DNA from: Lepidodermella squamata
Lineage: Eukaryota; Animalia; Gastrotricha
DNA: 64,000 nt
Direction of reading: 5' to 3'
Assembly: GCA_047495785.1 (NCBI GenBank)
Contig: JBLDXI010000074.1
Coordinates: 744,001 to 808,000, forward strand
Each line of letters opens with the position of its first letter. Positions within the stretch are counted from its first letter, which is position 1. The position numbers and the translations under genes were made by a program. This document shows positions 3,259-58,038 of the stretch, in pieces. The notes under the pieces were generated by a model. That model did no database searches and was not told where the DNA came from. It worked only from the letters and a program-made list of their open reading frames with translations.

Positions 3259-4482
3259 ATGAGTTTAAACCTTGAAGTGGTATCGAAAGCCACAAAAGAT
3301 GGATTGAATGCCGTGGTAAATTACATTAACCAGCCTCGGCCGATTTTAGCGACAATAGGCGGCGTTTACCTGGGCTATCACGCCACAAAAGCTACGCTTC
3401 GCCTCCTCCGATTTACCTGGGCCAATTTTATAGCTAGCGATAAAATTCAGGTCTCTAGCCTGGGCGAATATGCTGTTATTACAGGTGCCACTGATGGAAT
3501 CGGAAAGGTGAGCAAAAATGGTTTTTTTTTAAACTGAAGATAGTCCCAAAAAATCGAAATTTCAAATTCGAAATATCGCGGATCTCGATATATTTCTAAA
3601 ATTTCAATTTTATTTTTATTCAAAACTAAAATGATTATTCAATATTTTATAATGAAAAAATTTAAAAAATTGAATTTAAAAAAATTTGGGTCCCGTTTCT
3701 TAATTTTTTCAATTTTGAAATCGAAATATTATCGATCGAATGTATTTCAGGCGTATGCTTTCGAGTTGGCAAAACGAGGCCTGAACTTGGTCCTAATCAG
3801 CCGAACCCAATCTCGCCTCGAATCAACCGCCAAGGAAATCAACGCCCTGTACCCCAAAACTAAAATCAAGCTAATTCAAGCCGATTTCGAGAAAACAGAG
3901 AACATCTACGAAAAAATCGAAGCTGAACTCGTAAAACTGGACATTGCAATCCTCGTCAACAACGTCGGTGGTAACATCAATCACATGTTCGCTAGATTTT
4001 GCCGGTTGTCACGTGATGAAGTTTTCCGAAGCTTCAACCTGAATTTATTCGCGCCGGTCCTGATGTCTCGAATCGTGCTGCCTGGCATGATTGCCAAGAA
4101 AAAAGGGGCAATTATCAGCATTTCCTCAGCCGCGGCCATTTTCCCGCCTCTGAGTGGGCTGTACAGCGTGGCCAAGTCTGCAACGCGCTGTTTCATGGAC
4201 ATGTTAGCCATTCAATATGGCCGTAATTCCGGCGTGATTTTCCAGGAGGTTGAGCCGTTTTTAGTTGATACAAAATTAGCGGCTGATGTGACGGAAAAGC
4301 TGCCGAAATTTCTGCTTTGGAGTGTTGTGACGCCTAGCGATGTTTCTCAGCAGACGCTACGCACCCTGGGCCGATACGATGAAACGTGCGGAACGGTCAC
4401 GCATGACGTGGTTGCAGCGATTCTTCAGGCTGTTTCCTCTGGTAAACCGGGCAAAAGTGCCGAAGATCTGCTGATTGATTGA
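3259..4482 (+). CDS. Short-chain dehydrogenase/reductase, HSD17B12/very-long-chain 3-oxoacyl-CoA reductase type (copy 1); exons 3259-3507 and 3751-4482
   Basis: YAVITGATDGIGK|AYAFELAKRG Rossmann motif across a GT-AG intron, ILVNNVG, catalytic YSVAK, N-terminal hydrophobic anchor. Confidence 0.9.
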
Positions 4483-5550: not shown

Positions 5551-7138
5551 ATGCTCGGCAAATATTTTCCTGAAAAAGAAATTTATTCAGCAGTGAAAAA
5601 TAATTTCTACGCGCCGGTTCGGGATTACTTTTTCGAGTCACCAAGGCCACTCTTATCGGCGTTCGGAGCGACGATTTTGGGGTATTATGCTGCTAAAACA
5701 ACGGCTCGCTTCATTGGTTTCACGTGGGCACACGTCGCTGGCGATAAAATCAAGGTGGCCGATTTGGGCGAGTATGCTGTTATAACCGGTGCAACCGACG
5801 GCATTGGAAAGGTATATAAACAACTCTTTTACATATTATAGGTCTTGTTTTATGGTTCAAGTACTGAATTTCAGCGTCGTAGCTGCATTTTTAAGATGTT
5901 TTGCGCGATTTCGAAGACCATCAGCTGGGCACTCCAAGCAATGTTTTATCTTTTTCGATTTCCGATGATTTTTCGTGATTTTTCGGGTCATTCCAAGAGA
6001 TCATTAATTTTTATGATAGTATTTGTTGCCGTAAAACTAAAACTCGAGCTGAATTTTGCCATGTGATCAAAGAAAGACTTATTTTACTTATCTAGGTTAA
6101 ACGCCTAATGGTCGACGCAGAAATTAGGTCAGGCGTATACCGGACGGCTAAAATTAGGTCAAGGCTAATCTTTGAGGTCACGACCGCTTTTCAAAAGCAG
6201 CTTGACGTAATTTCTTTCTGATGAGACCTAATAGCTAGATCTACCCTAAATTTTAAAATATGAAGCTGCAAGCTGTCAACAGTCCTAATTTTTCGTGGTG
6301 TATTTAAGGAAAGACATTCGAAGTTTATAAATAGTGAGTACCTACTTCATCGAAAAATCGTTCAAAATCTAAAATAGAATAACGTTTCTCATCTTTCAAT
6401 TGCCAGGCTTATGCATTCGAGTTGGCAAAACGAGGCTTGAATTTGGTCCTAATCAGCCGAACCCAATCGCGCCTCGAATCAACCGCCAAGGAAATCAACG
6501 CCCTTTACCCCAAAACTAGCATCAGGTTAATTCAAGCCGATTTCGAGAAAACGGAGAAAATCTACGAAAAAATCGAAGCTGAACTCGGAAATCTCGACAT
6601 CGCAATCCTCGTCAACAACGTTGGCGCCATTATTAATGACGCATTTTCGAGGTTAAGTCGGTTGTGTCGAGACGAAATTACCCGATCAATCAACTGCAAC
6701 ATTTTCGCTCCGATTTTAATGACCCGACTTGTTCTACCCGGCTTGCTGGCCAAGAAAAAAGGCGCGATCATCAATGTTTCATCAGCCGCCGCTTATCTAC
6801 CGCCAACTCTTGGCATGTACAGCGTTACGAAAGCTACAACCCGCCGATTTATGGAAATGCTGGAGATGCAATATCCATTACGTAAATATGGCGTGATTTT
6901 TCAGGAGGTTGAGCCGTTTTTGGTTGATACGAAAATGGTGTTGGACATTTTCCGGGAAAATCGCTTTGTTATGAACACGATGGCGGCGAGTCCGCAGAGC
7001 GTTGTTTCAGCCACCCTGCGAACCCTGGGCAGGTTCAGCGTGACGAATGGTACGATTTGGCATGAAATACAACGGGTGATTCTGGGTTTGCTGCCAGATA
7101 GCAGCCGATCTGCGGTTGAAACGTTCGGTAAAGACTGA
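5551..7138 (+). CDS. HSD17B12/KAR-type SDR (copy 2); exons 5551-5811 and 6407-7138
   Basis: TGATDGIGK|AYAFELAKRG, ILVNNVG and YSVTK; same intron position as copy 1. Confidence 0.9.
5840..6080. repeat. Degenerate inverted-repeat (MITE-like) element in the SDR copy 2 intron
   Basis: TAGGTCTT...TGAATTTCAGC near 5840-5877 is imperfectly mirrored by GCTGAATTTT...AAGACTTA near 6048-6080. Confidence 0.3.
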
Positions 7139-14530: not shown

Positions 14531-15150
14531 CCTACAGCCTGAAAATCGGAAAATCGAAATAAATCATTTATCGGGGAAAGTTTATATCGCCGGATAATGA
14601 AAATTCTCGACGTGGATAAACTAATTTTTTCAAATTTTTCAAAAACTTTCAAAGCTAATCGCGGCCGAAGAATGGTAGTTGTTGACGACAGTCTTTAACA
14701 GGGTATGTAGCTGGCTTTGACGCTGCATGCACAGTTTGGCAATGTGCCATCATTTTCGAGAGGAAGTCAATAGGTTTGTGCTGGCGGCAGTGAAGATTTA
14801 TCAAATAGCTGAATAAGAGGCTCGGTTCTCGATAGCCGAGGCGAGCTTACTGTAATCAATTTTAGCTGTAGGATGTAGGGATTTCAAAGGTGAGTCTGCG
14901 TATAGACATTGCCTGTAACAGGCTGTTTATCCGTGAACAAGCTGGTGATTGCGTCCGGGGCTGCTCCGGTGACTCTCTGAGAATCATCATCGCCAGGTAA
15001 ATACAGGTACTTTATTTGAATGATTTCACGTTACATAGGGTTATGTCACTCAATAAGGAAGCTCAATACTACAGCCAGACACCAGCGAAAAACACAATAT
15101 CTCGCAATAGAGGAAAAATCAGAGAATGTATTTCACAGCAGCCGAATGAC

Positions 15151-15457
15151 TCAGTTAACGAGAATACGATGGGCTCCTTTACGGGCTCCTTGCACCAAGA
15201 AGGGTTCCTCGCGGACCTTACGGGCTCCTTGCTCCATGTAGGGTTCCTCACGGACTCTTTTACGGGCTCCTTCGACCAAGAAGGGTTCCTCGCGGACCTT
15301 ACGGGCCGATCCGGATACATTTTCTTCTGCTGATACAGTCAGTAAAGCGGCGAAAGCCTGGTAAAATGATTGGATAATATCATAGCATAGCATAGCATAG
15401 AGTTACTTCAAATGAGGAACTCACCACTGCAAGAGTGAGAAGGGGGATCTGGTTCAT
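15151..15457 (-). CDS. Secreted peptide precursor, family member A (79 aa, three RxVR-EEP cassettes); exons 15457-15425 and 15357-15151
   Basis: MNQIPLLTLAV|AFAALLTVSA signal peptide across a GT-AG intron, then RKVREEPFLVEGA, RKRVREEPYMEQGA, RKVREEPFLVQGA. TATA box and Inr lie upstream. Confidence 0.8.
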
Positions 15458-15488
15458 ATTTGATCGAAAGTTTGAATCGAAAGTGCAG

Positions 15489-15710
15489 AACTGAAAACTT
15501 ACAGCTCAGCCTCTCGTTTATATAGGCGCTCCCAGGTTAACCTCTGGCAACTGTGTAAACCCGAGTTCACTGGGCGTTGTGTGGATTCGCTTTTTGAATA
15601 ACAACACGATGACAGAGGCAATGCAGCATGAGCGCAATTGTCTAAGTTTAATAGAAAATTGCTGAAATACATAATATAAGCAAAGTTAGCGGCTTGTTTG
15701 CATAAGAAGC
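15489..15710 (-). promoter_or_regulatory. Promoter of member A: TATATAAA (15524-15517), Inr TCAGTT (15494-15489) and an upstream TGCAAACAAGCC motif
   Basis: TATA lies about 30 bp from a canonical TCAGTT Inr. The block is conserved upstream of the paralogous genes. Confidence 0.7.
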
Positions 15711-16004
15711 AAATATTGAATTGCTCATTTTCCAGGTCAAGATTATTACTGAGAGAGCAGGAAACATGAAGATTCCAAATTGTTGTCATTTTTCTTGGAT
15801 TTGGAGATCTAGGGTTTGTAAATGGTTCCATGAATCGTCCAAGTCTTAGTCCTAAAGTCTTTGTCTAACTTCAAGCTCAACAAAGCGCCTAGATGAGATT
15901 TAACGAGACATTCATTTAACATAGAATGAATAAAGAAGAGAAAGCGGTGTCGCGAACGAAAATGGTAGGCTTTACGCTCACATGTGTTTCACTCGCAATA
16001 TAAT

Positions 16005-16280
16005 GCTCATGTTCGCAAAAATGCCGGCATAATTACGGCTACCGCTTTATGTTTGGCACTGGCTTCTGGCGATGATGGCCGTAGGTGCGGTTTTTTCTTT
16101 TCTTTTGCATCTTCATTTTAAGGAGGTTAATGTCTTTTTACGTGAGATCATATTGCCCTTACGTTCATTACGTATACAAATTACGAGCGTAAAACAATGA
16201 TTCATCGTTTTGATTCATCGCTTGGCTAGCAGCTGGGTCGATATAAGTTTGACGCTGGTTTGGAACAGCCCGAGCCCATA
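16005..16280. repeat. Duplicated non-coding block, paralogous to ~19472-19780
   Basis: Shared CATGTTCGCAAAAA..GGCTACCGCTTT..TTCTTTTGCATCTTCATTTT..ACAAATTACGAGCGTA..AGCAGCTGGGT. It lies upstream of members A and B, indicating a tandem duplication. Confidence 0.75.
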
Positions 16281-16744
16281 AACATAATATAGGTAAGCTC
16301 ACAGAATCTGATGCGCTAATTCCTTACCGCTACCGCGCCATCGCTGCTGAAAGTTGAAAAAGGGAAAATTGGAAAATTAAGACGGTGCCCTAAATTTGCA
16401 TAAAACTCACTTCTGAACCTAAAATGCATAATTGTCATAATATTATACTACTGTCTTTAGGGGATAATAAAAACGAGCTCAGTTTATCCGATTATCCGAA
16501 GAGTTTTGATTCAACCTTTTGAATCAGAAAGCTGTAACGTAATGCTTATGCAATACTTTATTTGAGTAATTTAACCATAATATATGGGGCTTGTATCATT
16601 CAAGAAGGGATAAAACAACGGTCACAAAACAACAAACGAGACAGTACCCTGCAACAGTATAAAGAATGGCTCCATAAATGAAATTTACCCATCCGCTTAC
16701 ACTAATTACACTTCACAGCCGATCTCCTTCTTGTCTTTACGAGC

Positions 16745-18286
16745 TCACTGCACCATGGAAGTTTCCTCGCGAACCCTACGGGCTCCCTGCACCAAGAAGG
16801 GCTCTTCTCGCACCCGACGGGCTCCCTGTTCCATGGAAGTTTCCTCGCGAACCCGACGAGCTCCCTGCACCAAGAACGGTTCCTCGCGAACCCGACGGGC
16901 TCCCTGCACCAAGAAGGGCTCTTCACGCACCCGACGGGCTCCCTGTTCCATGGAAGTTTCCTCGCGAACCCGACGAGCTCCCTGCACCAAGAACGGTTCC
17001 TCGCGAACCCGACGGGCTCCCTGCACCCAGATGGGCTCTTCTCGCACCCGACGGGCTGCCTGTTCCATGGAAGTTTCCTCGCGAACCCGACGAGCTCCCT
17101 GCACCAAGAACGGTTCCTCGCGAACCCGACGGGCTTCCTGCACCAAGAAGGGCTCTTCACGCACCCGACGGGCTCCCTGTTCCATGGAAGTTTCCTCGCG
17201 AACCCGACGGGCTCCCTGCACCAAGATGGGCTCTTCTCGCACCCGACGGGCTCCCTGCACCAAGAAGGGCTCTTCACGCACCCGACGGGCTGCCTGTTCC
17301 ATGGAAGTTTCCTCGCGAACCCGACGGGCTCCCTGCACCAAGAAGGGCTCTTCACGCACCCGACGGGCTCCCTGTTCCATGGAAGTTTCCTCGCGAACCC
17401 GACGAGCTCCCTGCACCAAGAACGGTTCCTCGCGAACCCGACGGGCTCCCTGCACCAAGAAGGGCTCTTCACGCACCCGACGGGCTGCCTGTTCCATGGA
17501 AGTTTCCTCGCGAACCCGACGAGCTCCCTGCACCAAGAACGGTTCCTCGCGAACCCGACGGGCTCCCTGCACCAAGAAGGGCTCTTCACGCACCCGACGG
17601 GCTGCCTGTTCCATGGAAGTTTCCTCGCGAACCCGACGGGCTCCCTGCACCAAGATGGGCTCTTCTCGCACCCGACGGGCTCCCTGCACCAAGAAGGGCT
17701 CTTCTCGCACCCGACGGGCTCCCTGTTCCATGGAAGTTTCCTCGCGAACCCGACGGGCTCCCTGCACCAAGAAGGGCTCTTCACGCACCCGACGGGCTGC
17801 CTGTTCCATGGAAGTTTCCTCGCGAACCCGACGGGCTCCCTGCACCCAGATGGGCTCTTCTCGCACCCGACGGGCTGCCTGTTCCATGGAAGTTTCCTCG
17901 CGAACCCGACGAGCTCCCTGCACCAAGAACGGTTCCTCGCGAACCCGACGGGCTTCCTGCACCAAGAAGGGCTCTTCACGCACCCGACGGGCTCCCTGTT
18001 CCATGGAAGTTTCCTCGCGAACCCGACGGGCTCCCTGCACCAAGATGGGCTCTTCTCGCACCCGACGGGCTCCCTGCACCAAGAAGGGCTCTTCACGCAC
18101 CCGACGGGCTGCCTGTTCCATGGAAGTTTCCTCGCGAACCCGACGAGCCGATTCGGATACAATTTCTTCTGCCGATACAGTCTGCAACGCGGCGGCAGCC
18201 TATTCAATGACAGAGAATCATAGTAGCGGAGCTAATTAAAACCGAAAACGCACCACAGCAAGAGTGAGAAGGAGGATTTGGTTCAT
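16745..18286 (-). CDS. Secreted multi-copy peptide precursor, family member B (495 aa, 36 RRVR cassettes); exons 18286-18254 and 18199-16745
   Basis: MNQILLLTLAV|AAAALQTVSA signal peptide and a 54-nt GT-AG intron. Repeats are RRVR plus EEPFLVQGA/EETSMEQGA-type cores. Variation in the RRVREEP segment is synonymous in this frame. Confidence 0.85.
16748..18145. repeat. Coding 39-bp tandem array (36 units, last one truncated) with higher-order duplication
   Basis: The unit is 13 codons. Units 1-8 are repeated as units 22-29. Confidence 0.95.
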
Positions 18287-18317
18287 ATTTGATGGAAAGT
18301 TTGAAGCGACAGTGCAG

Positions 18318-18550
18318 AATTGAAAATTTTACAGCTCAGCCGTCCGTTTTTATAGGCACTCCCAGGTTAATCTCCGCCAACTGTTTAAACCCGCGGTCTC
18401 TGGGCGCACCATGTGATTCGTGGTTAGCGATGCACTTTGTGAATAACATCACGATGGCGGAGGCGATGTCACATGATCGCAATTGTCTAAGTTCAATAGA
18501 AACTCGCTGAAATGTTATGAACAATTTAACGGCTTGTTTGCACAGGAAGC
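18318..18550 (-). promoter_or_regulatory. Promoter of member B (TATAAAA 18354-18348, TCAATT Inr-like element, TGCAAACAAGCC motif near 18531-18542)
   Basis: Colinear similarity with the member A and member C promoters. Confidence 0.65.
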
Positions 18551-20350
18551 CGATGACGGATACTTACTCAATTATCCGTTTTTGAAGTAAGGAGAGAGCA
18601 GGAAAATGACAATTCGAAATAAATGCTGGCTATTATCTCATGTGCCGAGAAAACAGGCCGAGAATACAAACTACGCCAATAAATAGATTCTGAGTACCAA
18701 CGACATTTATGCCCAGAAAAAGGAGTCAACAAGTTGAAGTGAATTCGAGTGATAAATTATATTGTGATTGGTAAAATTGGTCCTGGAGAGCAAAGAACAG
18801 TCAGTAATTGAACCACGGTTGAAGAAGTCGAGCTTTGAAAAACTGAAAATATATCATCAGAAGTGATAAAGCTGTCGGTAAATGGTCGGTACTTTCGGAA
18901 TTGAAATGATTCCCTGATTTGCACAGGCCCCCTCTTAACAAGTTATTGCGTATCGTGCATGCAGTCAGAGGAGACTTAATCAACGGGTCAATGTCACTAG
19001 TCACGAAAAATGTAATTTTCGTCATTACGGTCCGATCTCGCTATTATGATTCGGGCAAATTTGATGTCAAAAGATTCCCTGTGCTTCAATGGCATCCAAG
19101 TTACTTGAACAAAATGCACAGAAGCATGTCGAAAATTTGAAATGTTGGCTAATAATATGGCCAGAGTTGACTATTGAAGTCAGAGCATTTTGATCGATAT
19201 CGTTCGTCTTTTAATTTTCTTGGATCAATTTATTTAAGGAAATTACGTCAGCGTCGTTGACCAACTCGGATTAAGGCTTGTACGCTTCCGTTTCGGGGAG
19301 ACGGGTGCCAAGTAAGAAGCGGCGTTAGCGTAAATAAATAGGCAAAGCAAAAGACTTTAAACTTGTCACCGCTAACCATGAAGAATGAAATTCCGTCGTC
19401 ATACTTCTGCTGACTGACTTCGTCTTCCAACTGTGTGCTTCTGTAAAGGTGCTCGTCCGCTATACTGATTAATTCATGTTCGCAAAAACTCCCTGTCAAA
19501 CCCTTTTTTGGTTGTATACATTCTGTGGGAATTTCGGCTACCGCTTTGTGTCTGACACTGGCGATGGTTGCCGCGGGTGCCGTATTTTCATTTCTTTTGC
19601 ATCTTCATTTTTTTATGTGGTGGTGTCTTTCTACGTGCATCATAATATTACACTGACGCCCATTGCGTTTACAAATTACGAGCGTAGAACAATAATTCAT
19701 CGTTAGCTTTGTTTCTGTTTGTTTGAATAGCAGCTGGGTTGATATACGTTTGCCGCTAGTTTGAAAAGGCTAAAGCCTACTCAACTGGTCACGTAGCCAG
19801 CAGTGGGGGTGGCGATGGGCGCTCTACAGCTGTTAGCCTTCCACATTTGAACACAGAACTATCGATTGCTGGAAACTGATCGGAAATCTTCTAATAGTTG
19901 TAGGAATTTCTAAAGGGATATATGCGTTGAGTGGGAGTTGGGAGTTGACATATATAGGCTCGAGTTGAAATTTTTCGAGAAAATTGAAGATGGGTTCATT
20001 TTGGATAAATTGGTCTTAAATAGCCACATAGTATGCTAGTATCAAAAACCAAAAGATGCAATGGATCGCACGGCCGAATGTTTCACGCCGGAGATTAATT
20101 TCAATCAGGCTAATTTTAGGGCATTCACTCGAAAGCGAACGTCGCAAAATTTGATCACAATATAGTAAGAGCTTTGGCATCGAAATAGGCGGCGGGCGAA
20201 CCGAAAAATCAATCGCTCACCGGGGACATGAGAAGATATTGTTTTATTCAATCATTTTTGTGAAGTTTCAAGTATATATACTATTCAAATATATACTATA
20301 CTAGATATATTGGTTTATCTCATGCACAGAACTTCCCATTTATTAATTTG

Positions 20351-26786: not shown

Positions 26787-27716
26787 TTAATGGCGTTCCA
26801 TGTGGAAATCTCGCGAATCCATCTCGTTGGCAAGACGCTTTAATAAAAAATATATAAATTCAACTGCATTTCGTTTAATTTATTGACTTACCACAGCAGA
26901 GCAGCTATTTATTTGGTGCGTGGAGAGACATTAATTCAACTTAAAAATTTAAATAAAAATCGAAACTTACAATCCGCACCTGAAATTAGGAAATTTATAT
27001 TTAATTTGATATGGCTATATTTAGCGGAATGAAATTGCTTACCAGCAGTATAAGCAGGCTTCTTCGCACATGGTTTGCCTAATACCGACCAATGTTCGGA
27101 ATCTGTGTTTATAGAGGCATCAGAAATATTTTCAAAAATGCTGGTTCCGATTTCATCTAATTGTTTACCGAACGTTGAGCGGGACGATGCCAAAGAGGCA
27201 GCAATAGCACGCGTTCTCACCCAACCGAGTCGAAGCCTTGTACGCCAAGTAGCATGGGCAGAAGTAGCCGATGACGCAGTTCATAGGGTGCCTAGCAGTT
27301 CATAAGGAATTATTAATAGGAATAGGAATAGGAATAAGAATAGGAATAGAAATAGGAATAGGAATAGGAATAGGAATAGGAATAGGAATAGGAATAGGAA
27401 TAGGAATAGGAATAGGAATAGGAATAGGGATTAGGAATTGAAATTAGGAAAAAGCAATAGGAAATCGTATTTAGACTTACGCGCAAAGCTCACAGATGCC
27501 ATGTCGCCAGACTTCGTTCTCGGCGCGTGCCGGCTGTTGCATGACGACGACAGTTGGCTGGGGCTGTTGAACGTGAACGACAGTCGGCTGGCCGCTGTAG
27601 CTGACGGCAGGCTGAGGAGCTGGGTATCCGGGCTGACCGGCCGGTTGGTAGCCCGGCTGGGCTGGTGGGTAGGCAGGCGGGTACTGCTGCTGTCCGGCAT
27701 ACTTTTCGTCAGACAT
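26787..27716 (-). CDS. PLAC8/cornifelin-family Cys-rich protein (copy 1); six exons including microexons 26979-26971 and 26904-26892
   Basis: P/Q/Y-rich N-terminus, WRHGICELCA|HPMNCVIGYFCPCYL..RLGEN..CC, then EEACLYCW|CGF|CSAV|RLANEM. Confidence 0.85.
27317..27430 (+). repeat. (GGAATA)n hexanucleotide microsatellite in PLAC8 copy 1 intron 1
   Basis: Long near-perfect run of GGAATA units. Confidence 0.95.
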
Positions 27717-32820: not shown

Positions 32821-35800
32821 ATGAAAATTTTCGACAGTCGCAGTATATTGTGGCTATTGTTTTTTGTTGTTCTGTCAACCTCGGCCGCTTTCTCCGACTG
32901 GTGGTCATCCTGGAGCGGTCCAAACGACGATGAACTTTCGACTACAACGCGAAAACCTGTGAAACTCACGAAATCGAAACCTACAAAATCTACCTCGACG
33001 TCCACTACTACGACGACGGCTATGCCATCTGCGACCGCGCCTTTGTTTCCCGATTCTGCTGATTTTCCGAATGATGACGAGCCGAAAAAGATTTTCGAGC
33101 CAGCGAATTCGGCCGATTTGCAAAAGCTGGATAAGCCTAAGGTCATAATCGATATTCCAGTCGATGGCGGTGAATTGAAGCGTGACTTGGCTAATTTCGT
33201 TTCGGATTCGATCAGCGACCAAAATCAGCCAACCTCGACCTTGGTTCACTCAACCGTGACCTTGGATCTGACTACTGAGTCTTCAACTGGAACCACTTTG
33301 GTACCAAATTCCGGCGACGAATTGCCTTTGACTTCTGAAACTTCGCCAACTTCGAAAAAACTATCTGATACTCGAAATTCTGAACCAGATGAAGGTGAAA
33401 CTGACGCGGCTAAAGTAGTTGAAGTTCAAGAATTTTCCGGTAAATTAGGCGTGGCGATGGCCGATTCAGACAACGAGACATCGACTTCTCTCGCATTTTC
33501 GACAACTTCGGAAAAGGTTCCAGTTGAACTTGGATCTTCAACTTCGGGTCCGAGTTCAGTCTCCAACACAACAATTGTTGCCAGTAGTTCGTTTGTCTCA
33601 ACTTCGAAACAGGTTCCAGTTGAGCTTGGAAGTTCGACATTGAGTTTAATTTTGGTCATCAACACCTCTTCAACTACTGATAAGCCAAGTTATTCAACTT
33701 TCTCAACTTCGAAAAAGGTTCCAGACCAGCTATCAACCGATCCAGCTCATCGCTTCCGTGTTCAATCTTACGATGAAGATGACGATGAAACTACGACTAC
33801 AGGTTCTAGCTTCGCCACTAATGGAACTACTTCGGTTCCAACTACAGTCCGGTTGGTTACTAATTCGACTTTTTCGAGCAAGAAAGAATTCTCGACCACG
33901 TCAAATCCAATTTCTATCACTACTATTGGGTTGAAAAATGTTACTGATACTGGGTTTACTGCGACCACTGTGGGTTCAACGGCCTTCAAGAGTTCCACTA
34001 CTACACAGGCTTCGACGACTAAGTCTCTTGGCGATCTTTTGAAGGAAGCACTGGCTTCAGATTATCTCTCTGATAAGGATTACCTCGATTCTTCGAATTC
34101 ATCTATGCCAAGTTCAACCTTGCTTCCTACAACAACCAAGGCGGTGGAAACAACAATTTTGCCCCGAAATGCAACGACAACCATCTCCGGTATTTCAGCC
34201 TCGGATTTGACCACTAGGAAGGTTGAATTAGAAACAACCGTGGATCCATCTAGAACTAGTACAAAGCTGGTTTCGATTGCTGTTGCTTCGGCGAATGCTT
34301 TCAACGAATCTAGTGCTACATTGGAAACAACAACGGGAGTCTCCAAATTCGATCTTGGCAATACAACGATGAGGCTGAATTCCACTACGGCCCGCATCTT
34401 GTTCGAAGCAACTACCAAATCGGCTATTTTGACTAGCTCTACTTCGAAAATAAATGTTTCGAGCTCAACTGTAGCTAGTACCAAGTCGGAATCGAATGCT
34501 ACAACCAAGCTGGTTCCAATTGAAGATTTGGAAAACCCGGGTGTTATGAGCCTTGAAAGATTGTTTGCGACAAAAGCTGAAGCTGGGAATGCAACAAGTA
34601 CGAACGCCACTACGACACAGAAGATTGACACGACTTCTACTGCTACTTCTTCGAATGCTTCGAACCTTACTATTGCTACGACTGTTTATTACGGGACAAA
34701 GACTTCGACTGGAGGTTCGACCACAGTATTGCCCAATAATACTACCAGCCAAGTTCGAACTTCAACCTCGATGGTTGATGGTCGTGTTGAGCTTGGAAAT
34801 GAGTCTACTACACCTAGGTTCCAAACAACAACCAGCAAAGTTATTGTTTCAGCTTCAAATCAGGCTGATGGTGTCATGGTTCGATCGGGTGATGTGTCCA
34901 CTGCCGCTTCTTCAACCACGACAAGTAAAGCTGGTACTTCTATTGGTAGATTCGACGATCGTGTAACTAAAACCGAATCTGTTTCCTCGACAACAAGCAA
35001 AGTCCAAGGATCGAATCAGGAACGTCCATCGAGCTTAATTGATAGTTCCCAAGCTGGTACCAAGTTAGCGCCCGAGCCCACAACGCCGGCCACAGCTTCA
35101 ACTAGAGTGCTCTCGACCTCGACCACTGGTTTGACAGTGAAATCCGAAAATCTCGAGTTCAAGTCGGTTGGTACCACGCCGGAACCGGTAGCTAAAACTG
35201 ATGTTCCAATCAGCAGCTCAACTAGTCAACGGATTAATACTCCCGAGGCCGAGTTTCCCAGTTCCACTGTGGTTTCGAGTGGTACCAAACTGGCTTCTAT
35301 CTCTCAAGCCGGGACCACAGCAGATTCTGCCTCGACCGCAACCTCGAAGCAAAGCTCAACAGAAGGTCCCAAGGTCCGATTTGAGGTTCCTGATGTTCTA
35401 TCAACATCTGTTCCTACCCGTCAAGCTGGTGGCAACTCGAATTCCGAATCTACCACAACTTCGAATTTTATTACAGCTTCTACTTCGAAATTAGTTCCTA
35501 GTTCTACAGAAGGTTCCAAGGTTCGATTTGAAGCTCCTGAGGTTCAATCAACCTCATCTATTGGTACCAAGTTGGAGCCGGCAGTCACTACTACTTCTCA
35601 ATTTGTCGAGTCGAAGATCGAGATGACTAGTTCCACTACGTTGTCAAGCAGTACCAAGCTGGTACCAACTCCGGTTATCGTGGTTTCAGGCCGAAAATCT
35701 GCCGGAGCGTTGTTTGGAGGCAGTGATTTCGATGATAAGCCAGGAGTTCAAAAAGGCGATCGTCACCTTGATAGGCTGATTCTATCCGGAACCACAAAGG

Positions 35801-38258
35801 AAGACCCGAATCAGCGAAAAATGCTCCTTATCGATAGCATGCAAGCTGACCAGCCATTACCTGCCAATCCCGAACCGAAGCCTGCGAAGATTGAGCCTGA
35901 ATCCAATTCGAAAGCAGCTACTTGGAATGTTGATAGTGATTCGGCTAAGCCTGATTCGAAGGTGAATGACAAGCTGCTGGAGCAAGAATTCGCGGCGACT
36001 CAGTGCCCAACATTGGACCTGATTCTAGCAGTCGATTTGATCTATTTCAAGACAAAGGAGCAATTTAACGCGGCTGCTCGGCCGATTTTGCAGAATTTCA
36101 TGCTGGATCTCAATCCGTGCCACGACGTCCGAATTTCTTCAGTAAGTTCAGTAATTCGTAAAACATAAAAAAATTGAAATTAATTAAAATTCTGAAATTT
36201 CAAAATTGGATTCCAAGAATCTTGATAATTTTTGAATATTAATAAATCAATTTTTTGGATTTAAAGTTCAAAATTCGAAACTTTTCAGTTTCGACCAGAT
36301 CTCTTAGATTTTTTAATTTTAGTTTTTCAATTTTTAGGTTGAGTATGGTAGTGCAGCGAATATTCGATTTCTACTCGATCATCACACTCCGGCGACCAAA
36401 GCTCGAGCTTATTTGGCCAATAATTACACGATTCGCGATGACAGCACGCTGGGCAGCATTTTCAGTGGAACTCAGCGAGCTTTGAGCGTTGTCCGTAATC
36501 AGGTCAGAAAATTCATAATATTTTGTTTAATTTTTATACCTATTGTTCTATTTTTTTAAATCTCATTCAATTTTCGTCTTTTAAATTATAATTAAATTTA
36601 AATTTAAATTTTAAATTAGAAATAAATGTTTCATTGAAATTCTCGAATTTTCTTTGAAGGTTTTGGAGCCCGGAGATGGCCATCGCCCAACCGGCCTGAC
36701 CTATTTATTCGTATTCACTGGCACGGAACCAACCCAGTGGGGCGAGACGATCAACCAAGCGGAACATCTTCGCCTCGATAAGGTCGTAATCACGGTCTTC
36801 GGCTTCGGATCCGGTGCTCCGAATATCCGAGTCCTAGCCAGCTCACCCACTCTGTACTTCCCAATCACCATCGACCCGCCTACAGCCGAAACTTTCGACT
36901 CAATCAGGATCGCATTAATGCAGGGTTTATTCGACTATGCCGAGCCTACAACCCCGGCTCCATTCAAGACGAAATATGTGAAAATTTCATCGTTACGAAT
37001 TCGATCTGTTGATTCAGTAGTCGAATCTTCGCTGCTGAAAATCGCGGACAATCACGACGATCTACCGGTTAAAAGATCGGTGAATCGCTGCCTCGCTCCG
37101 GATATCATTTTCGTAATCGATCGTTGCTACTTCAATCGATCGCTTTTCGACGCTAATATGCTACCGGTTTTGCAAGGTTTCGCGACTCTGACGAATCCTT
37201 GTGTCGATTTGCGGGTCAGTATTGTCGAGTTCAAGCGAGGCGTCAAGGCGCGGTCATGGTTGGCGGACCACACGCCGGCGGCTACTGCGATCAGTTATTT
37301 GAAGAATTTCCAGTCGTTCGATGATACCGATCTGGATAACGGTATGCCTGGCTGCCAAACCGGAGGTGCATTGGAGTTTGTTCGCAAAAAGGTGAGAATC
37401 GTTTTTTATTTCTCACCTGTAGCGAAAATTTCAATTATTTTTTTAATTTGAAATAATCAAAATTTTAATTTTCAACATGTTCGAATATTCAAGGAAACTG
37501 AAATATTGCGAAATTAAATAAATAAATGAATTTTAATGACATTTTTCTATCAAAGACTTCCTGGGCTCGTGGCCACCCTGATTTCGAATTTTCAATTTTT
37601 TTTAATTTTCGGATTGGAATTTCCTGAAATTTTGATTCAGGTTTACATCAAGGGTTTGATTGATTCGAGAAATAAAAAATGTATGAAATTGCCAATTAGT
37701 ACTTTAGCCTGAAATGCTGAAATCGAATTCCGAAATCGATTTCACAAATCAGTGATTTTTCATGAAATCAAAGTTTTTCATTGTCCTGTATTCGTTCCAC
37801 TTGAATGATTTGACTTTTTGCGCGCATTTCAGGTGTTATCGAAAGGTCGCGGCCATCGTCACCTAAGCCCTGTGCATGTTCTGCTGTTCCTGGGTACGAC
37901 GCCCAGCGACCCGGCGCACACAATCAACCATGCGGAACATTTACGCGTCAACACCCACGCTGTTCTACGCGTGTTCTCGTTCGGCCAGCACATCGACCCG
38001 GACTACGTCCGCATTCTAGCCAACGCTCCGGCCTACTACTACGACCTCAACGAGGCCGCAATGCCGATATTGTCGGTGACGGCATCGAATGAGCCAGCTT
38101 CGAACACAACCACCCATGCGGTCACATCGATTGAAACGACATCGGCGAGTTTCAACGGGAGTGGAGAAGCAGGCCCGACGGTTGAAATTTCGACGACGAC
38201 AACGACCCAAAGCAGCAAGGCCACTCTATTCGATGCGATTGACGACATTTTGAGCTGA
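32821..38258 (+). CDS. Secreted Ser/Thr-rich mucin-like protein with two divergent vWA domains (~1547 aa); exons 32821-36141, 36338-36502, 36660-37391, 37833-38258
   Basis: Signal peptide, about 950 aa of S/T-rich sequence, then two vWA-like units: DLILAVD..VRISS|VEYG..LFVFTG..VFGFG..LAS and DIIFVID..RVSIVEF..TGGALEF..LLFLG..LAN. Confidence 0.8.
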
Positions 38259-39193: not shown

Positions 39194-39587
39194 TTAGATC
39201 CTAGAGCCCGCGATAACATTATTTTGGAGATGGTACTTATTGGATGGTAATTTGACACCCCGGCTGGCTTCCTCGTGGATTTGTTCCTCGCGGAGTGCCA
39301 ACTTTACGTTTGTCGCAGCCTTGGTGTTCAACTTGGCGTGCTTGCCCTTGTTGGCGCCATGGGCTTTCTTGCCCGGTGCATGGGTGTGCTTTTTGCCCTT
39401 TAGCTTCTTGTCTGCATGAGCCGCCACCTTCGCGTAGGGGGCCTCGCGCGCCGAATCGTCAGCATCGTCGGCTGATACAGCGAGCACAGCGACGAAAGCC
39501 TGTGAAATGAAAGGGTGTAGTAGCAAAAGAGATAATTTCAGCTCGGAAACTAACCACTGCAAGGGTGAGAAGGAGGATCTTGTTCAT
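39194..39587 (-). CDS. Secreted His/Lys-rich peptide precursor, family member C (112 aa); exons 39587-39555 and 39499-39194
   Basis: MNKILLLTLAV|AFVAVLAVSA signal peptide, acidic DDADDSAR spacer, cationic KKLKGKKHTHAPGKKAHGANKGKH region, TATAAAA upstream near 39653-39647. Confidence 0.8.
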
Positions 39588-40200
39588 GTCGAAACGAAAA
39601 TTAAAAGCGAAAAAATAGTTGTGAAAATTTGCTGCTCAGCGTTGCGTTTTATAGGCACTCCCAGGTTAACCTCCGCCAACTGATCAAACTCGAGTTCACT
39701 AGGCGCATTCACGTGTTTCGCGGATACCGATGCACTTGTGGATGATAAAACACAACGACGGAGGCGAATTGGCATTGTCTTATTGTTTAAATTTCATAAG
39801 ATCATAGCTGACAAATTATGTAAAATTAGTCGGCTTGTATGCACAAGAAGAAGACAAGAAGCCGTTGAAATACACTAGGCATAAATTCATATATGCAGCA
39901 GTATGGAATTATTTAATTTCTCTATGGCTAGTTATGAAATAATGCTATATTCCTATCTGCCCACGACACATCTCGGCTCCCTAAAAAGGTGCAATAGGTG
40001 CATGGTTTTCAGACCTGTTATGCGTCAGATCTCGTGGGATTTTAATACCAAAAAATGTTATTTCGTTATAATCTCAATCGATGCTGGAATTAAGAAAATG
40101 TCACAAATTGGCGAATTTTGCGACGGCTGGTTACTGCGACTGTTGCACCCTCATTTTTCCTGATTTGGGTTATAGAATTGGTGCCATGACAAGATATTCG

Positions 40201-41002: not shown

Positions 41003-42950
41003 GAGAGCTGTTGGTTTTATTGTTTCAAAACGAAAATAAAAGCACCGGCCACGATTGGGCTTTGGGCGCATCAGAAATATCGTTATAATAATATCGTATA
41101 ATATATAATAAATGTAATATAGCACAGTATGGTACCACACACACAAAAATATCATAGGCAGAGGTAGTTTTTTCCAGAGTGATGCTCAGAGTAATATTTA
41201 TTCACATTTTTTATTAATATTGCCGATATAGTTGGTCAAGATTAGGTAGATGGGATAGGCGGATATGTATGCAATTTTAGAGTCATCCGGTAATTGTAGG
41301 CGAGGGATAGTAATTTCGATAAATGTGCAGAGCCGCTAGATTCACAGCAAATTATAGAATTAATTATGTCAGTTTTATCAGGTTTCATTTCAGCGTTATT
41401 TATATTATGTAGATACGGCAAGTAGTTGCATTCTAGGTATAGGTGAGTTAAAAGTTCTACTGAGTCAGCGAAGCTATTTAGAGATAGGACGGGATTGTTA
41501 CTATTTTTATAGCAGAAAATACATCTAAGGCCGAAGTTATTTATATAGCAAAACGGTTTATGAATGGAATTAGTTCTAATCATAGCTAGCGTTTGGATAT
41601 TTTTAAGTGACCAGAAAGCTTGCCGCGTACTCGAGTACATTAGTAGTTTGTCAAATTTTTCTTCAGAGTAAACAGGATTTTGATAGAGCGATTTTAGAGA
41701 AGAGGCCGTCGACAATTTGTCATTTTCGACCCATTTCTCATACCATCTCTCAAGCAGGGCTAGGCCCTCAAATTTAGATGTAGCATTGAAAATTTCTTTT
41801 CCGCCCAGTTTTTCAACATCTTCTGGTAAATTTTTGAAGATATGTTTATATAGATTTTTGTTTGAGTCAATTATTTCGAAAGCTGTCTTCAGCAGTATAT
41901 GGTTGTCCTCGAATTTGAGTTTAAGAAAGTGACGTATAGCTGCTTTAGTGAGGATTAGGCTTGGAGGGTCTAGGTAGAATTCACGTTTCACGAGCTCGTC
42001 TCTCGCCGCGGCGGGAATTCGGCAGAGCTGTTTTACGAAATGAGTATTGAAAGGAAAAATTTTGGCCTTTTTTGATTGACCCCAAAATCCTCCAGCATAG
42101 GAATAGTTGCTAACCAGATAGGAATTATAGAGAAGGTGAAACGTTTTGGGTGGTAGATATGTGGTGAACCGATCGATCATGTTGGGTATAAAAGCGGCAA
42201 TTCGTTTCGCATTCGCATTGACAACCTCCACCATTTTATCAAAATTCAAATTATTAGTAAAATAAACTCCTAGGTATTTAAATTCTTTAACTCTTTCGAG
42301 TTGTTCGCCGTTTAGATAAAATTTTGGTTGATTATTCTCAACAAATTTCTTTTCAAAAATCAAGATTTTTGTTTTATCGACGTTAATTATTAATGAATTT
42401 TCTTCAGCATAAGCTACTAGCTCATCCAGGAGGCTCTGCAGCTGCTCAGCGCTTTCTGCCAGTAGGACCAAGTCATCGGCGTATAGGATTGCCAAGACTA
42501 CATATTCACCGAAGGTCAAGCCAGGGAAAACTTTCATTAGGAAAGGAATGAGATCGTTTATAAAAATTGAAAACAAAAGTGGTGATAATGGGTCACCCTG
42601 TCGGACTCCCACGTTTGACTTTATTGGCTTATCGAATAGAATAGTCGATTTAATTCTAAGCAGCAATGTATTGTCGGCGTACATGTTCCTAATGACCTCA
42701 ATAAAGGACAAAGGCAGTCCTATTTTTCTAAGCTTCTTCATTAAGAGAGCACGGCTAATATTGTCGAACGCATTTGAAAAATCTACGAAGGCTGTGTATA
42801 TTTTCTTTTTCCTAGTAAGGTAATAAGCCACGATGGCGTAGAATAGAGTACACGCATCTACTGTGCCTATTTTTGGCGTGAATCCGAACTGTTCGGGTCG
42901 CAAAATCTTTTTAGCCGTGCACCATTCTCGCAAGCGTTTTTCTAGGATAC
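41003..42950 (-). mobile_element. 5'-truncated non-LTR retrotransposon (RT plus C-terminal region; CR1/L2/RTE-like) with 9-bp TSD TTGAAATTA
   Basis: EQFGF, FVDFSNAFD, GVRQGDPLSPLLF, LYADD, FKYLGV and a C-terminal CxxC..H....C. The TSD is at 40994-41002 and 42951-42959. The rejoined flanks match the empty site downstream of PLAC8 copy 1. Confidence 0.92.
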
Positions 42951-43073
42951 TTGAAATTATCGCAAAAAATAAAGCAATCAATTGCTGTAGTGAATTTAAA
43001 GCGAGTTTTTGGCACAACCTCATTTGCGATTTCGTTGATGGTGAGAGGCTTGTTCTTTGTTAATGAGCAGTTT

Positions 43074-43881
43074 TCAATGGCGCTCGATGTAGAATTTTCG
43101 TGAATCCATCTCGTTGATAAGACGCTTTAATAAATAAATATACAAATTCAAACGATTTTTTTTCTATTTCATGACTTACAAGAGCAGCGCAGCTATTTAG
43201 TTAGTCAGTGGGAAACGTAAATTAAACTTATAATCGAAGAAAAAAAATCGTCACTTACAACCCGCAACTGAAATGCAGAAAAGGCAAATGTAATTTTTGT
43301 AATAGCTATTCAGTGGGATAAAATTGCTAACCAGCAGTATAAGCAGGCTTCGTCACACATGTCTTGCTCGATACCGATCAAAGTGCGGAATCTGTGTTAG
43401 AGGAATCCGAAATATTTCCAAAAAAGCGGCTTGTTTAATCGTTTACCGAACGTTGAGCGGGACGATGCCGAAGCAGCAGCCATAGCACCCGTTCTCACCC
43501 AAGTGATTCGAAGCCTTGCACGAAATGTAGAATGGGCAGCAGAAGCCGAAGATACAGTTTGAAGGGTGCCTTGCAGTTCATAATAGGAATAGGAATAGGG
43601 TTAGGAATAGGAATATCGTGTCACATTTAGACCTACACGCAAAGATCGCAGACGCCATGTCGCCAGACCTCGTTCCCGGCGCGTATCGCGTGTTGCAGCA
43701 GACTCAGCGCACCGTCGTCGGGCTGAGGCTGTCGAATGTGAACAAAAGTCGGCTGGCGGCCACTGCGTTTGACGGCAGGCTGAGGAGCTGGGTTTCCGGG
43801 CTGACCGGCCGGTTGGTAGTCCGGTTGGGCTTCTGGGTGAGCAGACGGGTACAGCGGTGCGGCATTCTTTTCGTCAGACAT
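43074..43881 (-). CDS. PLAC8/cornifelin-family protein (copy 2); microexons 43267-43259 and 43192-43180
   Basis: Colinear paralog of copy 1 with the same microexon sizes and an open spliced frame. Confidence 0.82.
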
Positions 43882-53400: not shown

Positions 53401-54934
53401 TAATTAATTCGATAAATTTGTCGGCTAACATCTCGCAAAACTAACAGTTATAACTCAATCCAGCTTTATCCATTAGATAGATGCTTAGCATTGACCCATC
53501 CCGTATTCCTGTCCAATTGTTGTAAGTAATTTCGACTTGATAACCGTCGTCACCAAACTCAACTTTGTCCTGATTTCAATGGAATATCATTCGGATCGAT
53601 GATTTTTCCTTATTCTCATACCGTGCTCCAAATAAATGCCACATCTCTGGTACGTTCGGTGCTCCGTGCTATTTCTAGCGTGAGGCTCGAGTTCGATACT
53701 ACACAGCTACCAATTGGGTACCATTTTAAAACTGAGAATCGATTAAATTGAGCGACAATTAAGGAAACAGCAAGAAATCTTACGAAAAGTATCAAATCGG
53801 TCAATTGATATTTCGTCGAGAAAAGCAGTTGAATAGCCTTCAGGAGGAGGCAGCATAGGCGCCAACGGGCTCCCAATATAGTTAGGGCGGAACTTCATGT
53901 CTGAAAAGACAATGTCGAGTATGTTTACCTAAAATGGCCTAAATTTCTTACCGTATTGAAGCTCGTAGATAGCCAATCCACGTATTACGATGAGCTCCTC
54001 GGCTTGTGAACCAAGTGGTAAGACTGAAGCCAGACCGACAAGAGCATTTCCGCGACGGATCGTTGATCGCAAGAACAGAGCTTCGTGAATTGAGGCGCTG
54101 CATGCGAAAAATGGCGATTCTGCATTTCTCGGAGCAAAGTAAATAGCCAATAGATTGCTAACCATCTGCACAATCATGACGGCATCCGAAAAATCTGTGG
54201 GGCCATTTGCATCGATCAGCAGACTGTCGCACATAGCAAACTGGTGAGCAAAACCATTTTTTGAAATGTAAGGCCAAGGCTCTTGTCTGATATTTGCTCC
54301 TTCCCGGCGTGAAGTTGCATGAATGATGTCTGGCTTGATGTGGATTCCAAGACCATTCAGCGCATTGTTAGCTGGGTCTTTCAGGCCATAATAAGGAAAC
54401 GTAAGGTTAATCATGTCGATGGATGATTCTTCAAAGAGGTAGAAGACGAAACCGCCTAAGGCCTTCCATGCAGAGATGTCTTTCGCAGTGATGGAGAATC
54501 TTATTTCCACACGCCAGTTGACCATCGTTCGTGGCAGCTTGGTCTATCAAAAATTAGCTACAGCTCTATTTCAGGATCCTAGCAGCCTAAACTATTACCG
54601 TGCTCCAAATTGTTACATTTTCCTTAGGTATAATGGGGCTTCTTAATGCCATATTTTGTGGGCTATTTTTAGCCGGTAACACTGGAAAGTTGCCATTCGG
54701 GGATATTATGTGCCAATTCCCTGAAGTTTCTGAAACGGTTTGGAAACAACGAATCTATAGTTCCATGCGAAGTGCTCATATCTTACTCAACGAGCTGAAA
54801 TCAACCATGGATAATTCAGGAACAAAAACGGCATTATAACCAGGAAACTTGGCATACTCCCGTGGTAGGGGCTGGGCTGCAATTCTTGCGAATGATAGCA
54901 AGAAAAACCAACCGCTTAGACTTAGTCGCGCCAT
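50416..54934 (-). CDS. Cys-loop ligand-gated ion channel subunit with two L-type-lectin-like domains, EGF, LamG-like domain and Thr-rich stalk (~1377 aa, eight exons)
   Basis: Exons 54934-54787, 54729-54599, 54543-53952, 53900-53784, 53731-53622, 53569-53446, 53389-52961 and 52898-50416 are all GT-AG and phase-compatible. The channel part has the Cys-loop CPFDIAKFPFDQQSC, loop A IWKPQI and four TM helices. Confidence 0.8.
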
Positions 54935-57069: not shown

Positions 57070-57416
57070 TTTGAATTTTGAATTTATGCCAAGTGTGTAT
57101 TATCACCGGCTTCTTATGCAAACAAGCCACCTCGCTAGCGTTTCGGTATAACTCTCCATTTGACGGTAAGTATTTTACCGCAGCATGCAAACAGGGTTAC
57201 ATTAATGCTTGTGCGTAGAAACTAAAAGTCTTTGAATGCTTGAGTGTCTCAGTGTATTGCTGCTTGCGGTAAATTATTTACCGCAACTAGAGAACAATGG
57301 CGAGATGGAGTTACCGTCAAATGGAGAGTTATATCGAAACGCTAGCGAGGCGACTTGTTTGCACTTTGCACAAGAAGCCGGTGAAAGTACACCAGGCATA
57401 ATTCAAAATTCAAATA
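57070..57416. repeat. Inverted repeat (~100-bp arms) upstream of member D
   Basis: 57070-57170 mirrors 57310-57416, for example CTCGCTAGCGTTTCG.TATAACTCTCCATTTGACGGTAA versus TTACCGTCAAATGGAGAGTTATA.CGAAACGCTAGCGAG. Confidence 0.85.
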
Positions 57417-57665
57417 TGCAAATGTGTGACCTAATTTTTCATAATATTTCAGCAATGTTCTTATGGATGCCTCTTCGCCGCTGCCGTTTTTTTCATCACC
57501 CAATAATTGCATCGGTATCCACGAAACACGTGAATGCGCCTCGTCATACGCACGTGAACTCGAGTTTGAACAGTTGGCGGCATTTGTCCCACGAAGGCCT
57601 ATAAAATAAGAAGGCTGGCGGCAAATTTTCACAATTATTTTTTCATTCAAAAATTTCTTTTCAAC

Positions 57666-58038
57666 ATGAACAAGATCCTCCTTCTCACCCTTGCAGTGGT
57701 CCGTTTCCGAGCTGAAGTTATCTCTTTTGCTACCACATTCTTTCATTTCACAGGCTTTCGTCGCCGTGGTTGCTGTAGCAGCCGACGATGCTGATCGCGA
57801 ATCGGCGCGTGAGGCCCCCTACGCGAAGGTAGCTCATGCAGACAAGAAGCATAAAGGCAAAAAGCACTCTCATGCACCGGGCAAGAAAGCCCATGGCGCC
57901 AACAAGGGCAAGGCCGTCAAGTTGAACAGCAGGGCACCGCCAGATGTCAAGATGCTTCTCCGCGAGGAACAAATCCAAGAGGAAGCTAGCCGGAGAACCT
58001 TTATTGCTGGTGGTGACGCCCCGATCAATAGGACATAA
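57666..58038 (+). CDS. Secreted His/Lys-rich peptide precursor, family member D (105 aa); exons 57666-57698 and 57754-58038
   Basis: MNKILLLTLAV|AFVAVVAVAA signal peptide and TATAAAA at 57600. It is an inverted paralog of member C, including the 3' flank. Confidence 0.8.

Follow-up and report, generated by a model that had tools for sequence, protein, structure and literature searches.

A 36-cassette gene of the gastrotrich Lepidodermella squamata, a probable multicopy peptide precursor, shares its pre-pro module with three neighboring genes

We analyzed a 64,000-nucleotide stretch of the genome of Lepidodermella squamata (Gastrotricha), comprising positions 744,001 to 808,000 of contig JBLDXI010000074.1 in assembly GCA_047495785.1 and referred to here as the window. 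Its GC content is approximately 42%; that of the published Lepidodermella squamata assembly is 43% (PMC11660948). The minus strand of the window carries a two-exon gene, designated g1, which runs from an ATG at 18286 through a GT-AG intron to a stop codon at 16745 (Table 1). When exon 1 (18286-18254) is spliced to exon 2 (18199-16745), an open reading frame (ORF) of 1488 nt is obtained, comprising 495 codons with no internal stops. The encoded product is comprised of a predicted signal peptide (residues 1 to 21), an acidic propiece (residues 22 to 29), and 36 short cassettes starting at residue 30. The signal peptide has a hydrophobic core (residues 4 to 17, with a mean Kyte-Doolittle value of 2.3) and V-S-A at positions -3 to -1; the cut site was placed by eye according to the -3/-1 rule. 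An initial annotation of this DNA had proposed a spliced minus-strand gene with a signal peptide, an acidic spacer, and 36 cassettes, and this model proved to be exact, including the number of cassettes in each class. The array is far beyond what chance would produce, since it combines 35 perfectly in-register 39-nt units, an open frame joined to a signal-peptide exon, and silent-site differences that leave the amino acids unchanged. We conclude that g1 is a genuine, transcribed two-exon animal gene.

Further inspection of the window revealed that g1 is one of a family of four genes (g1 to g4), which had escaped the initial annotation; the family, and the codon-level evidence for selection described below, are reported here for the first time. 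The window contains four occurrences of the sequence at the end of the signal exon, compared with an expectation of zero. All four genes have a promoter of approximately 260 bp, a 33-nt signal exon, a phase 0 intron of 54 to 67 nt that lies at the same codon, and an acidic propiece ending in Ser-Ala-Arg. Across the module formed by exon 1, the intron, and the propiece up to Ser-Ala-Arg, the mean column identity is 77%, and the similarity stops exactly at that point. The tandem paralogue g2 encodes three cassettes (RKVR-EEPFLVEGA, RKRVR-EEPYMEQGA, and RKVR-EEPFLVQGA) followed by the tail RK-GAHRILVN. The products of g3 and g4 are nonrepetitive and rich in Lys, His, Gly, and Ala, with net charges of +8 to +10; that of g3 has 112 residues and a net charge of +10. 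Their mature regions are identical at 57 of 72 aligned residues (79%). In contrast, no alignment between the mature parts of g2 and g3 was returned by BLASTP at an E value of 100 or below. The family thus consists of a conserved pre-pro module joined to divergent mature domains. An origin of the cassettes from the g3/g4-type motifs REAPYAKVA and REEQIHEEASR was considered and rejected, as the likeness is only visual and BLASTP aligned no mature regions. We also noted that the stretch K-K-H-(T/S)-H-A-P-G-K-K is conserved between g3 and g4. Formally it has the dibasic-peptide-Gly-dibasic layout of an amidation-type site, which may be due to chance in a sequence so rich in Lys.

Table 1. Positions of g1 and its three paralogues in the window
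Feature	Coordinates	Strand	Description
g1 promoter and 5' untranslated region (UTR)	18287..18544	-	Blocks conserved with the three paralogues (four-way alignment)
g1 promoter block	18390-18374	-	GTTTAAACAGTTGGCGG; conserved in the paralogues
g1 TATA box	18354-18347	-	TATAAAAA; 68 nt 5' of the ATG
g1 exon 1, coding part	18254..18286	-	MNQILLLTLAV, signal peptide residues 1-11
g1 intron	18200..18253	-	54 nt, GTGCGT...AATAG, phase 0; positioned as in the three paralogues
g1 exon 2, remainder of signal peptide	18170..18199	-	AAAALQTVSA; signal peptidase predicted to cut after V-S-A (residue 21)
g1 acidic propiece	18146..18169	-	EEIVSESA; ends at the Ser-Ala-Arg boundary common to the family
g1 cassette array	16745..18145	-	36 x 13 residues; the last has 11 residues plus TGA (16747-16745)
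g1 3' UTR	16557..16744	-	AATAAA at 16562-16557, about 185 nt past the stop
g2, tandem paralogue	15011..15540	-	79 residues; three cassettes and a short tail
g2 TATA box	15524-15517	-	
g2 exon 1	15457-15425	-	
g2 intron	15424-15358	-	67 nt
g2 exon 2	15357-15151	-	
g2 AATAAA	15016-15011	-	
g3	39194..39689	-	Same promoter blocks; intron of 55 nt
g3 exon 1	39587-39555	-	
g3 exon 2	39499-39194	-	
g4	57564..58038	+	105 residues; intron of 55 nt
g4 exon 1	57666-57698	+	
g4 exon 2	57754-58038	+	

The relationship extends upstream of the coding regions. Motif searches of the window found two promoter blocks confined to the four genes, where 0 to 0.6 matches would be anticipated by chance. The conserved blocks of the promoter regions (18544-18287, 15720-15458, 39850-39588, and 57400-57665) include a forkhead-like GCAAACA. 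A CACGTG E-box is found in the g3 and g4 promoters only, and CAGTTG lies just 5' of the TATA box. The conserved blocks are candidate cell-type enhancer elements of a secretory gene family.

In order to assess transcription, two public sequencing runs that contain the locus (X1 and X2) were mapped onto positions 14700-18700. X2 behaves as genomic DNA: 27 of 30 bins were covered, including intergenic DNA. X1 behaves as cDNA, as it covers 15048-15358 and beyond together with 16570-18183, corresponding to the predicted exons of g2 and g1 only; its depth was about zero in intergenic bins 15504-16441 and zero in promoter bins 18184-18700. The loose ends of X1 contigs carry AAGCAGTGGTATCAACGCAGAGT, which we take to be the SMART cDNA oligonucleotide. 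The X1 contig across the 3' end of g1 (16570-16807) had a depth of 243. Two further X1 contigs end at 15358 and 15424, and their loose letters spell the far side of the g2 intron; the GT-AG splice of g2 is seen directly in these cDNA contigs, in minus-strand orientation. The g3 locus was found in X1 (0.63 of its words) and in three very small runs from 2014, which suggests that the g3 transcript is abundant. In addition, two haplotypes were present in X2 at 14755-15140, in the noncoding flank; 13 substitutions and 7 gapped letters separate one 252-nt contig from the sequence of the window. Variants of both haplotypes also were observed in X1. This indicates high allelic divergence in this interval and expression of both alleles.

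Each g1 cassette consists of RRVR followed by an acidic core. The most common cores are EEPFLVQGA (15 copies), EETSMEQAA (7 copies), EETSMEQGA (6 copies), and EEPILVQGA (3 copies); EEPFLVQEA and EEPIWVQGA occur twice each, and a terminal EETSMVQ lies just before the stop codon. According to Tandem Repeats Finder, the array spans 16739-18145; its periods are 39 x n bases, and indels amount to 0%. At the DNA level the 36 cassettes fall into nine distinct types, arranged in the order ABCDEFAGABDHCABFABFDBABCDEFAGFDBFDHI. The eight-cassette block ABCDEFAG, which forms cassettes 1 to 8, is found again as cassettes 22 to 29, and the order of types shows that the array grew by multicassette duplications. 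The protein contains 36 R-R and 36 R-x-x-R motifs, one of each per cassette. The initial annotation had remarked on the lack of an amidation signal, and this was borne out by a count of zero G-[KR]-[KR] motifs in g1 and g2: Gly never directly precedes the basic residues, and Ala always precedes Arg-Arg. The g1 product contains no Cys and no Tyr, and a sequence scan found no N-glycosylation site. Its net charge is +18, and that of the individual cores is -2 to -3. An S-x-E motif is present in every copy of the polar class of cores, giving 14 in g1. S-x-E is the consensus of the secretory-pathway kinase Fam20C, and phosphorylation of the polar cassettes at this motif is possible. AlphaFold modeling of the first 316 residues encoded by exon 2 gave a mean predicted local distance difference test score (pLDDT) of 42.9 and a predicted template modeling score (pTM) of 0.20; with a single sequence as input, this is weak evidence. 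Such low confidence would be expected for a precursor, and the product probably is an intrinsically disordered polyprotein.

The amino acid sequence of the cassettes is under strong constraint. The 13 residues encoded by types B and F are identical, and the two types differ by six synonymous changes and no replacements, a pattern with a probability of about 3.5e-4 if changes were random (neutrality). RRVREE is invariant in 35 cassettes, and four of its six codons (those for Val, the fourth Arg, and both Glu residues) vary silently. Comparison of the EEPFLVQGA cassettes of g1 with that of g2 gave a proportion of synonymous differences (pS) of 0.46 to 0.56 and a proportion of nonsynonymous differences (pN) of 0.05. 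The allelic differences in the coding region of g2 comprise three silent changes and one replacement, the latter in the C-terminal tail.

Five of the six frames across the g1 array are open, and when the frames were compared by their ratio of amino acid to nucleotide changes, the lowest values were those of the proposed frame (0.41) and of the wobble-aligned antisense frame (0.42). This ratio does not separate the two and was discarded as a means of choosing the frame. Both observations are what would be anticipated if the array were a noncoding transcribed 39-bp minisatellite, or if the product came from another frame or strand. We consider this highly improbable. Only the minus-strand frame is joined by a GT-AG intron to a signal-peptide exon, with a TATA box upstream and AATAAA downstream; the same architecture recurs in three paralogues, one of which has its spliced junction in cDNA; and divergence that is confined to silent sites is seen both between cassettes and between genes. 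The minus strand was chosen on the basis of the signal exon, the orientation of the intron, the TATA box, and the poly(A) signal.

Searches for relatives were carried out on collections that evidently contained neither the proteins of this genome nor other gastrotrich data. A word-index protein search of 5.8 billion clusters returned no homologue for g1 exon 2, and g3 exon 2 was without a match in a search of the same type. When 1.84 billion representatives were searched exhaustively with HMMER, 93 matches were obtained, all of which were periodic or low-complexity look-alikes. The highest identity among them (54%; the matches with the best E values were lower in identity) belonged to P0006, with the repeat unit RRVAAADPLVQGA, which shares LVQGARRV with the cassette. 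P0006 is a dubious multiexon gene model without a signal peptide, and its locus (L001 6699-7074, GCA_051989625.1) is a 39-bp GC-rich minisatellite in a GC-rich stretch, crowded with other minisatellites, of an unrelated assembly. It was rejected as a homologue because chance alone would give an identity of eight residues in 2.4e11 residues, and repetition amplifies it; we judged the match to be coincidental and an illustration of how repeats inflate HMMER scores. Two metagenome scans gave a single match; it lay antisense within a bacterial gene for an Fe-S protein and was discarded as due to chance. The ESM Atlas returned only generic repeat proteins with low recognition. The initial annotation had recognized no neuropeptide family in the cores; in keeping with this, the protein searches gave no homologue and no Pfam family scored above its cutoff for g1, a CBS match (20.8 bits against a 24-bit cutoff, with 0 stretches) being spurious. 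Rfam gave no match in the window. Within the reach of these searches, g1 has no relative outside its lineage, which does not imply that it is unique within gastrotrichs.

We consider it reasonably probable that g1 encodes a multicopy peptide precursor processed by convertases, with the cleavage and the role of the products being predictions. The product would enter the secretory pathway through the endoplasmic reticulum by means of its 21-residue signal peptide, which presumably is then removed. Subtilisin-like proprotein convertases would cut at the invariant basic junctions, a carboxypeptidase would trim the basic ends, and about 36 to 37 short peptides of two interleaved classes would be released: a hydrophobic class, EEP[FI][LW]VQ[GE]A, with 22 copies, and a polar class, EETSMEQ[GA]A, with 13 copies plus the terminal EETSMVQ. 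Three sets of products can be envisaged. Cuts after both R-R and V-R, i.e., two per junction, would yield 9-mers; a cut after R-R only would yield 11-mers starting with V-R-E-E; and a cut after R-R-V-R only would yield 12-mers ending in R-R-V, since a carboxypeptidase specific for basic residues would stop at Val.

Comparison within the family favors Ala-Arg-(Arg/Lys) as the common junction. It bounds the propiece and every cassette of both g1 and g2, as well as the g2 tail (GA-RK-GAHRILVN), at which the motif is not followed by Val-Arg. One g2 junction is expanded to RKR, and the motif aligns with the Ser-Ala-Arg end of the propiece in g3 and g4. Set beside the R-X-(K/R)-R pattern of furin-cleaved antimicrobial polyproteins, the complete junctions (R-R-V-R in g1; R-K-V-R and K-R-V-R in g2) carry Val at P2 and agree with R-X-X-R, the minimal pattern, alone; the conservation of this Val suggests that it belongs to one of the products. 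The RRVR of the initial annotation is a putative furin-type site; the junction common to all boundaries is Ala-Arg-(Arg/Lys). The acidic residue at P1' would be compatible with convertase-type enzymes by analogy with Kex2, which processes fungal repeat precursors at KR-EA sites, where an acidic residue likewise follows the basic site (PMC6339444).

Several observations weigh against this reading. The protein, the peptides, and the cleavage products are predictions from the sequence. RRVR is only a minimal R-X-X-R site, and as a carboxypeptidase would stall at the Val, clean 9-mers need two cuts per junction. Val at the P1' position of an Arg-Arg site is generally considered unfavorable for convertases, and its strict conservation may just as well point to a role in structure or interaction. 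The cores carry no amidation signal or known bioactive signature, and a perfectly regular length together with alternating charge blocks also is typical of structural or adhesive repeat proteins. With regard to the transcript, the initial annotation had staked the gene on a spliced minus-strand RNA. The exon-only cDNA and the g2 junction largely uphold this; the exon 1-exon 2 junction of g1 was not among the X1 contigs listed, so that for its position we rely on the four paralogues, which are built identically. As X1 is kept as contigs, it informs on neither transcript level nor strand.

The main rival is that the g1 protein is secreted intact as a disordered, repetitive polyampholyte, such as a glue, granule-matrix, coacervate, or coat component, in which the RRVR(+)/EE(-) blocks and the hydrophobic PFLV patches would drive self-association or binding to charged partners. 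We regard this as unlikely, though well worth weighing. It would account for the perfectly regular 13-residue period with 0% indels, for the strict alternation of positive and negative blocks in a disordered protein with a net charge of +18 and no Cys, and for an invariant Val in the basic block that is superfluous for a convertase site. Gastrotrichs possess duo-gland adhesive organs, and the richness in Lys and His of the presumably coregulated g3 and g4 is shared by many adhesive proteins. However, Ala-Arg-(Arg/Lys) looks like a maturation site, as it recurs at the propiece and the g2 tail and aligns with the Ser-Ala-Arg of g3 and g4, and a secretory pathway that contains convertases would hardly leave exposed Arg clusters of a disordered protein uncut. 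The protein also lacks the Tyr/DOPA, Gly-rich, or Cys cross-linking chemistry typical of known glues; neither a confident repetitive fold (pLDDT, 42.9) nor a residue for cross-linking (0 Cys and 0 Tyr) was found. If the product is processed, the precursor could be a classical neuropeptide or hormone preprohormone of neurons or endocrine cells. We think this improbable. Preprohormones of invertebrates and cnidarians typically have very high copy numbers, each copy in g1 lies between basic cleavage motifs, and the cassettes are under strong purifying selection. Set against this are the lack of a C-terminal Gly amidation signal and of similarity to any known family, the presence of two peptide classes with no spacers, and a pre-pro module and promoter in common with cationic proteins of 80 to 90 residues, which would be unusual for neuropeptide genes.

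The shared pre-pro module and promoter suggest that g1 to g4 are expressed in the same cell type and contribute to one secretion. Since coexpression with the cationic g3 and g4 products is implied by the common promoter, we lean toward an exocrine or bulk secretion (defense, pheromone, or adhesion chemistry) as a better fit than a classical neuropeptide. A more specific proposal, which we offer as a long shot, is that the four genes supply a charge-matched, two-component secretion of a single gland cell type, in which cleavage of the polyprotein would yield small anionic peptides by the dozen. Two roles can be imagined for these peptides: they would neutralize and package the coexpressed cationic g3 and g4 proteins inside the granule, or they would serve a duo-gland adhesive organ as its small, negatively charged releasing factor. 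In the flatworm adhesive system, such a releasing factor has been postulated but never identified (PMC6410801). Either role, if true (adhesion release or granule charge balancing), would bear on a question that is still open in temporary bioadhesion. A further possibility, to which we give scarcely any credence, is a precursor resembling those of ribosomally synthesized and posttranslationally modified peptides (RiPPs), such as the Kex2-processed repeats of the fungal ustiloxin type, with tailoring by nearby enzymes. The layout matches that of fungal Kex2-processed repeat proteins (KEPs) and RiPP precursors (PMC6339444, PMC7329392), and the window also contains a P450 gene (23912-25012) and genes for short-chain dehydrogenases. 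Nothing, however, ties these enzyme genes to g1, from which they differ in promoter and orientation and are at least 5 kb distant, and residues of the kind usually cross-linked (Tyr, Cys, or Trp) are missing from the cores. We know of no animal precedent for a precursor of this kind.

To our knowledge, no secreted peptide of a gastrotrich has been characterized, and full-text literature searches found none; g1 supplies concrete peptide masses to look for, with three alternative sets of products. The gene also is an example of how a 36-copy polyprotein can be built on a pre-pro region held in common with unrelated cationic proteins, which parallels the frog-skin and venom gene superfamilies.

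The remainder of the window contains further genes and repeats. Three paralogous short-chain dehydrogenase genes (adh_short) lie on the plus strand at 3631-4482, 6422-7138, and 59732-60445, and two lectin-like/EGF/cys-loop fusion genes lie on the minus strand at 50416-54934 and 60442-63545; together these paralogues point to segmental duplication within the window. A single 1115-codon ORF on the plus strand (32821-36168) has a signal-like N terminus and a very Ser/Thr-rich, mucin-like body, and an ORF at 36654-37451 possibly is related to it. Between g3 and g4, a 593-codon minus-strand ORF (41242-43023) matches RVT_1 (E value of 1e-32) and probably belongs to a retroelement. AATAGG hexamer microsatellites were found at 27315-27463 (24 copies) and 43582-43615 (6 copies).

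We do not place g1 in any of the precursor families with which it was compared, since it lacks those of their defining features that could be assessed (amidation, Kex2/Ste13 processing, cationic cores, and homology). Like invertebrate and cnidarian preprohormones, g1 has a signal peptide and many near-identical short copies between basic sites, with acidic residues beside the cut sites and a very high copy number (PMC9545775). Antho-RFamide precursors, for instance, contain 19 to 21 copies (PMC9545775). Preprohormones, however, have Gly-(Lys/Arg) amidation signals, usually have spacers, and belong to recognizable families, whereas g1 has two interleaved classes of acidic cores, no amidation signal or spacer, and no sequence relative. 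Of the features by which neuropeptide precursors are recognized, the signal peptide and the basic-flanked copies are present in g1, and the amidation Gly and a family relationship are absent.

The KEPs, which include the yeast alpha-factor precursor, are likewise secreted proteins with repeats separated by KR or RR (PMC6339444, PMC7329392), and in both systems an acidic residue directly follows the basic site (KR-EA in KEPs and RR(VR)-EE in g1). KEP peptides are unmodified and exocytosed, and some KEPs have two or three motif types per protein. The g1 repeats, each of which follows RR, agree with the published definition of repeats that each follow KR, RR, or KK (PMC6339444). KEPs, on the other hand, are fungal and are defined by processing through Kex2, Kex1, and Ste13, which does not apply to g1, an animal gene with an intron and animal-type signals. 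It has no X-Ala/X-Pro Ste13 signature after the basic site and no homology to KEPs. The animal character of the window is apparent from its cys-loop receptor ligand-binding domains, its RVT_1 retroelement, its GT-AG introns of 54 to 67 nt, and the animal label of the runs.

Among furin-cleaved antimicrobial polyproteins of insects, Baramicin A, apidaecin, and the Drosocin of D. neotestacea share with g1 a "protein operon" layout of tandem peptides between basic sites, in which distinct products are made in fixed proportions (PMC8423362). Baramicin has R-X-R-R sites, cationic peptides, and few repeats (three IM10-like peptides); g1 has R-R-V-R sites and 36 units, and there is no homology. The cationic or Pro-rich cores expected of antimicrobial peptides are not found in g1, the cores of which are acidic, with net charges of -2 to -3.

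The closest parallel to the family as a whole is one of architecture. A conserved pre-pro region with divergent mature regions also is a feature of the conotoxin superfamilies. Both hallmarks of such pre-pro superfamilies, the conserved pre-pro region and mature regions that are unrelated between subfamilies, were found in g1 to g4. In the dermaseptin superfamily and in venom precursors, as in g1 to g4, the pre-pro region is conserved up to a basic residue and the mature parts are unrelated (PMC5358776). The resemblance is not one of homology, and no member of those superfamilies is a 36-fold acidic tandem array like that of g1; g3 and g4 fit the pattern of an acidic propiece followed by a cationic peptide that is seen in precursors of the dermaseptin type.

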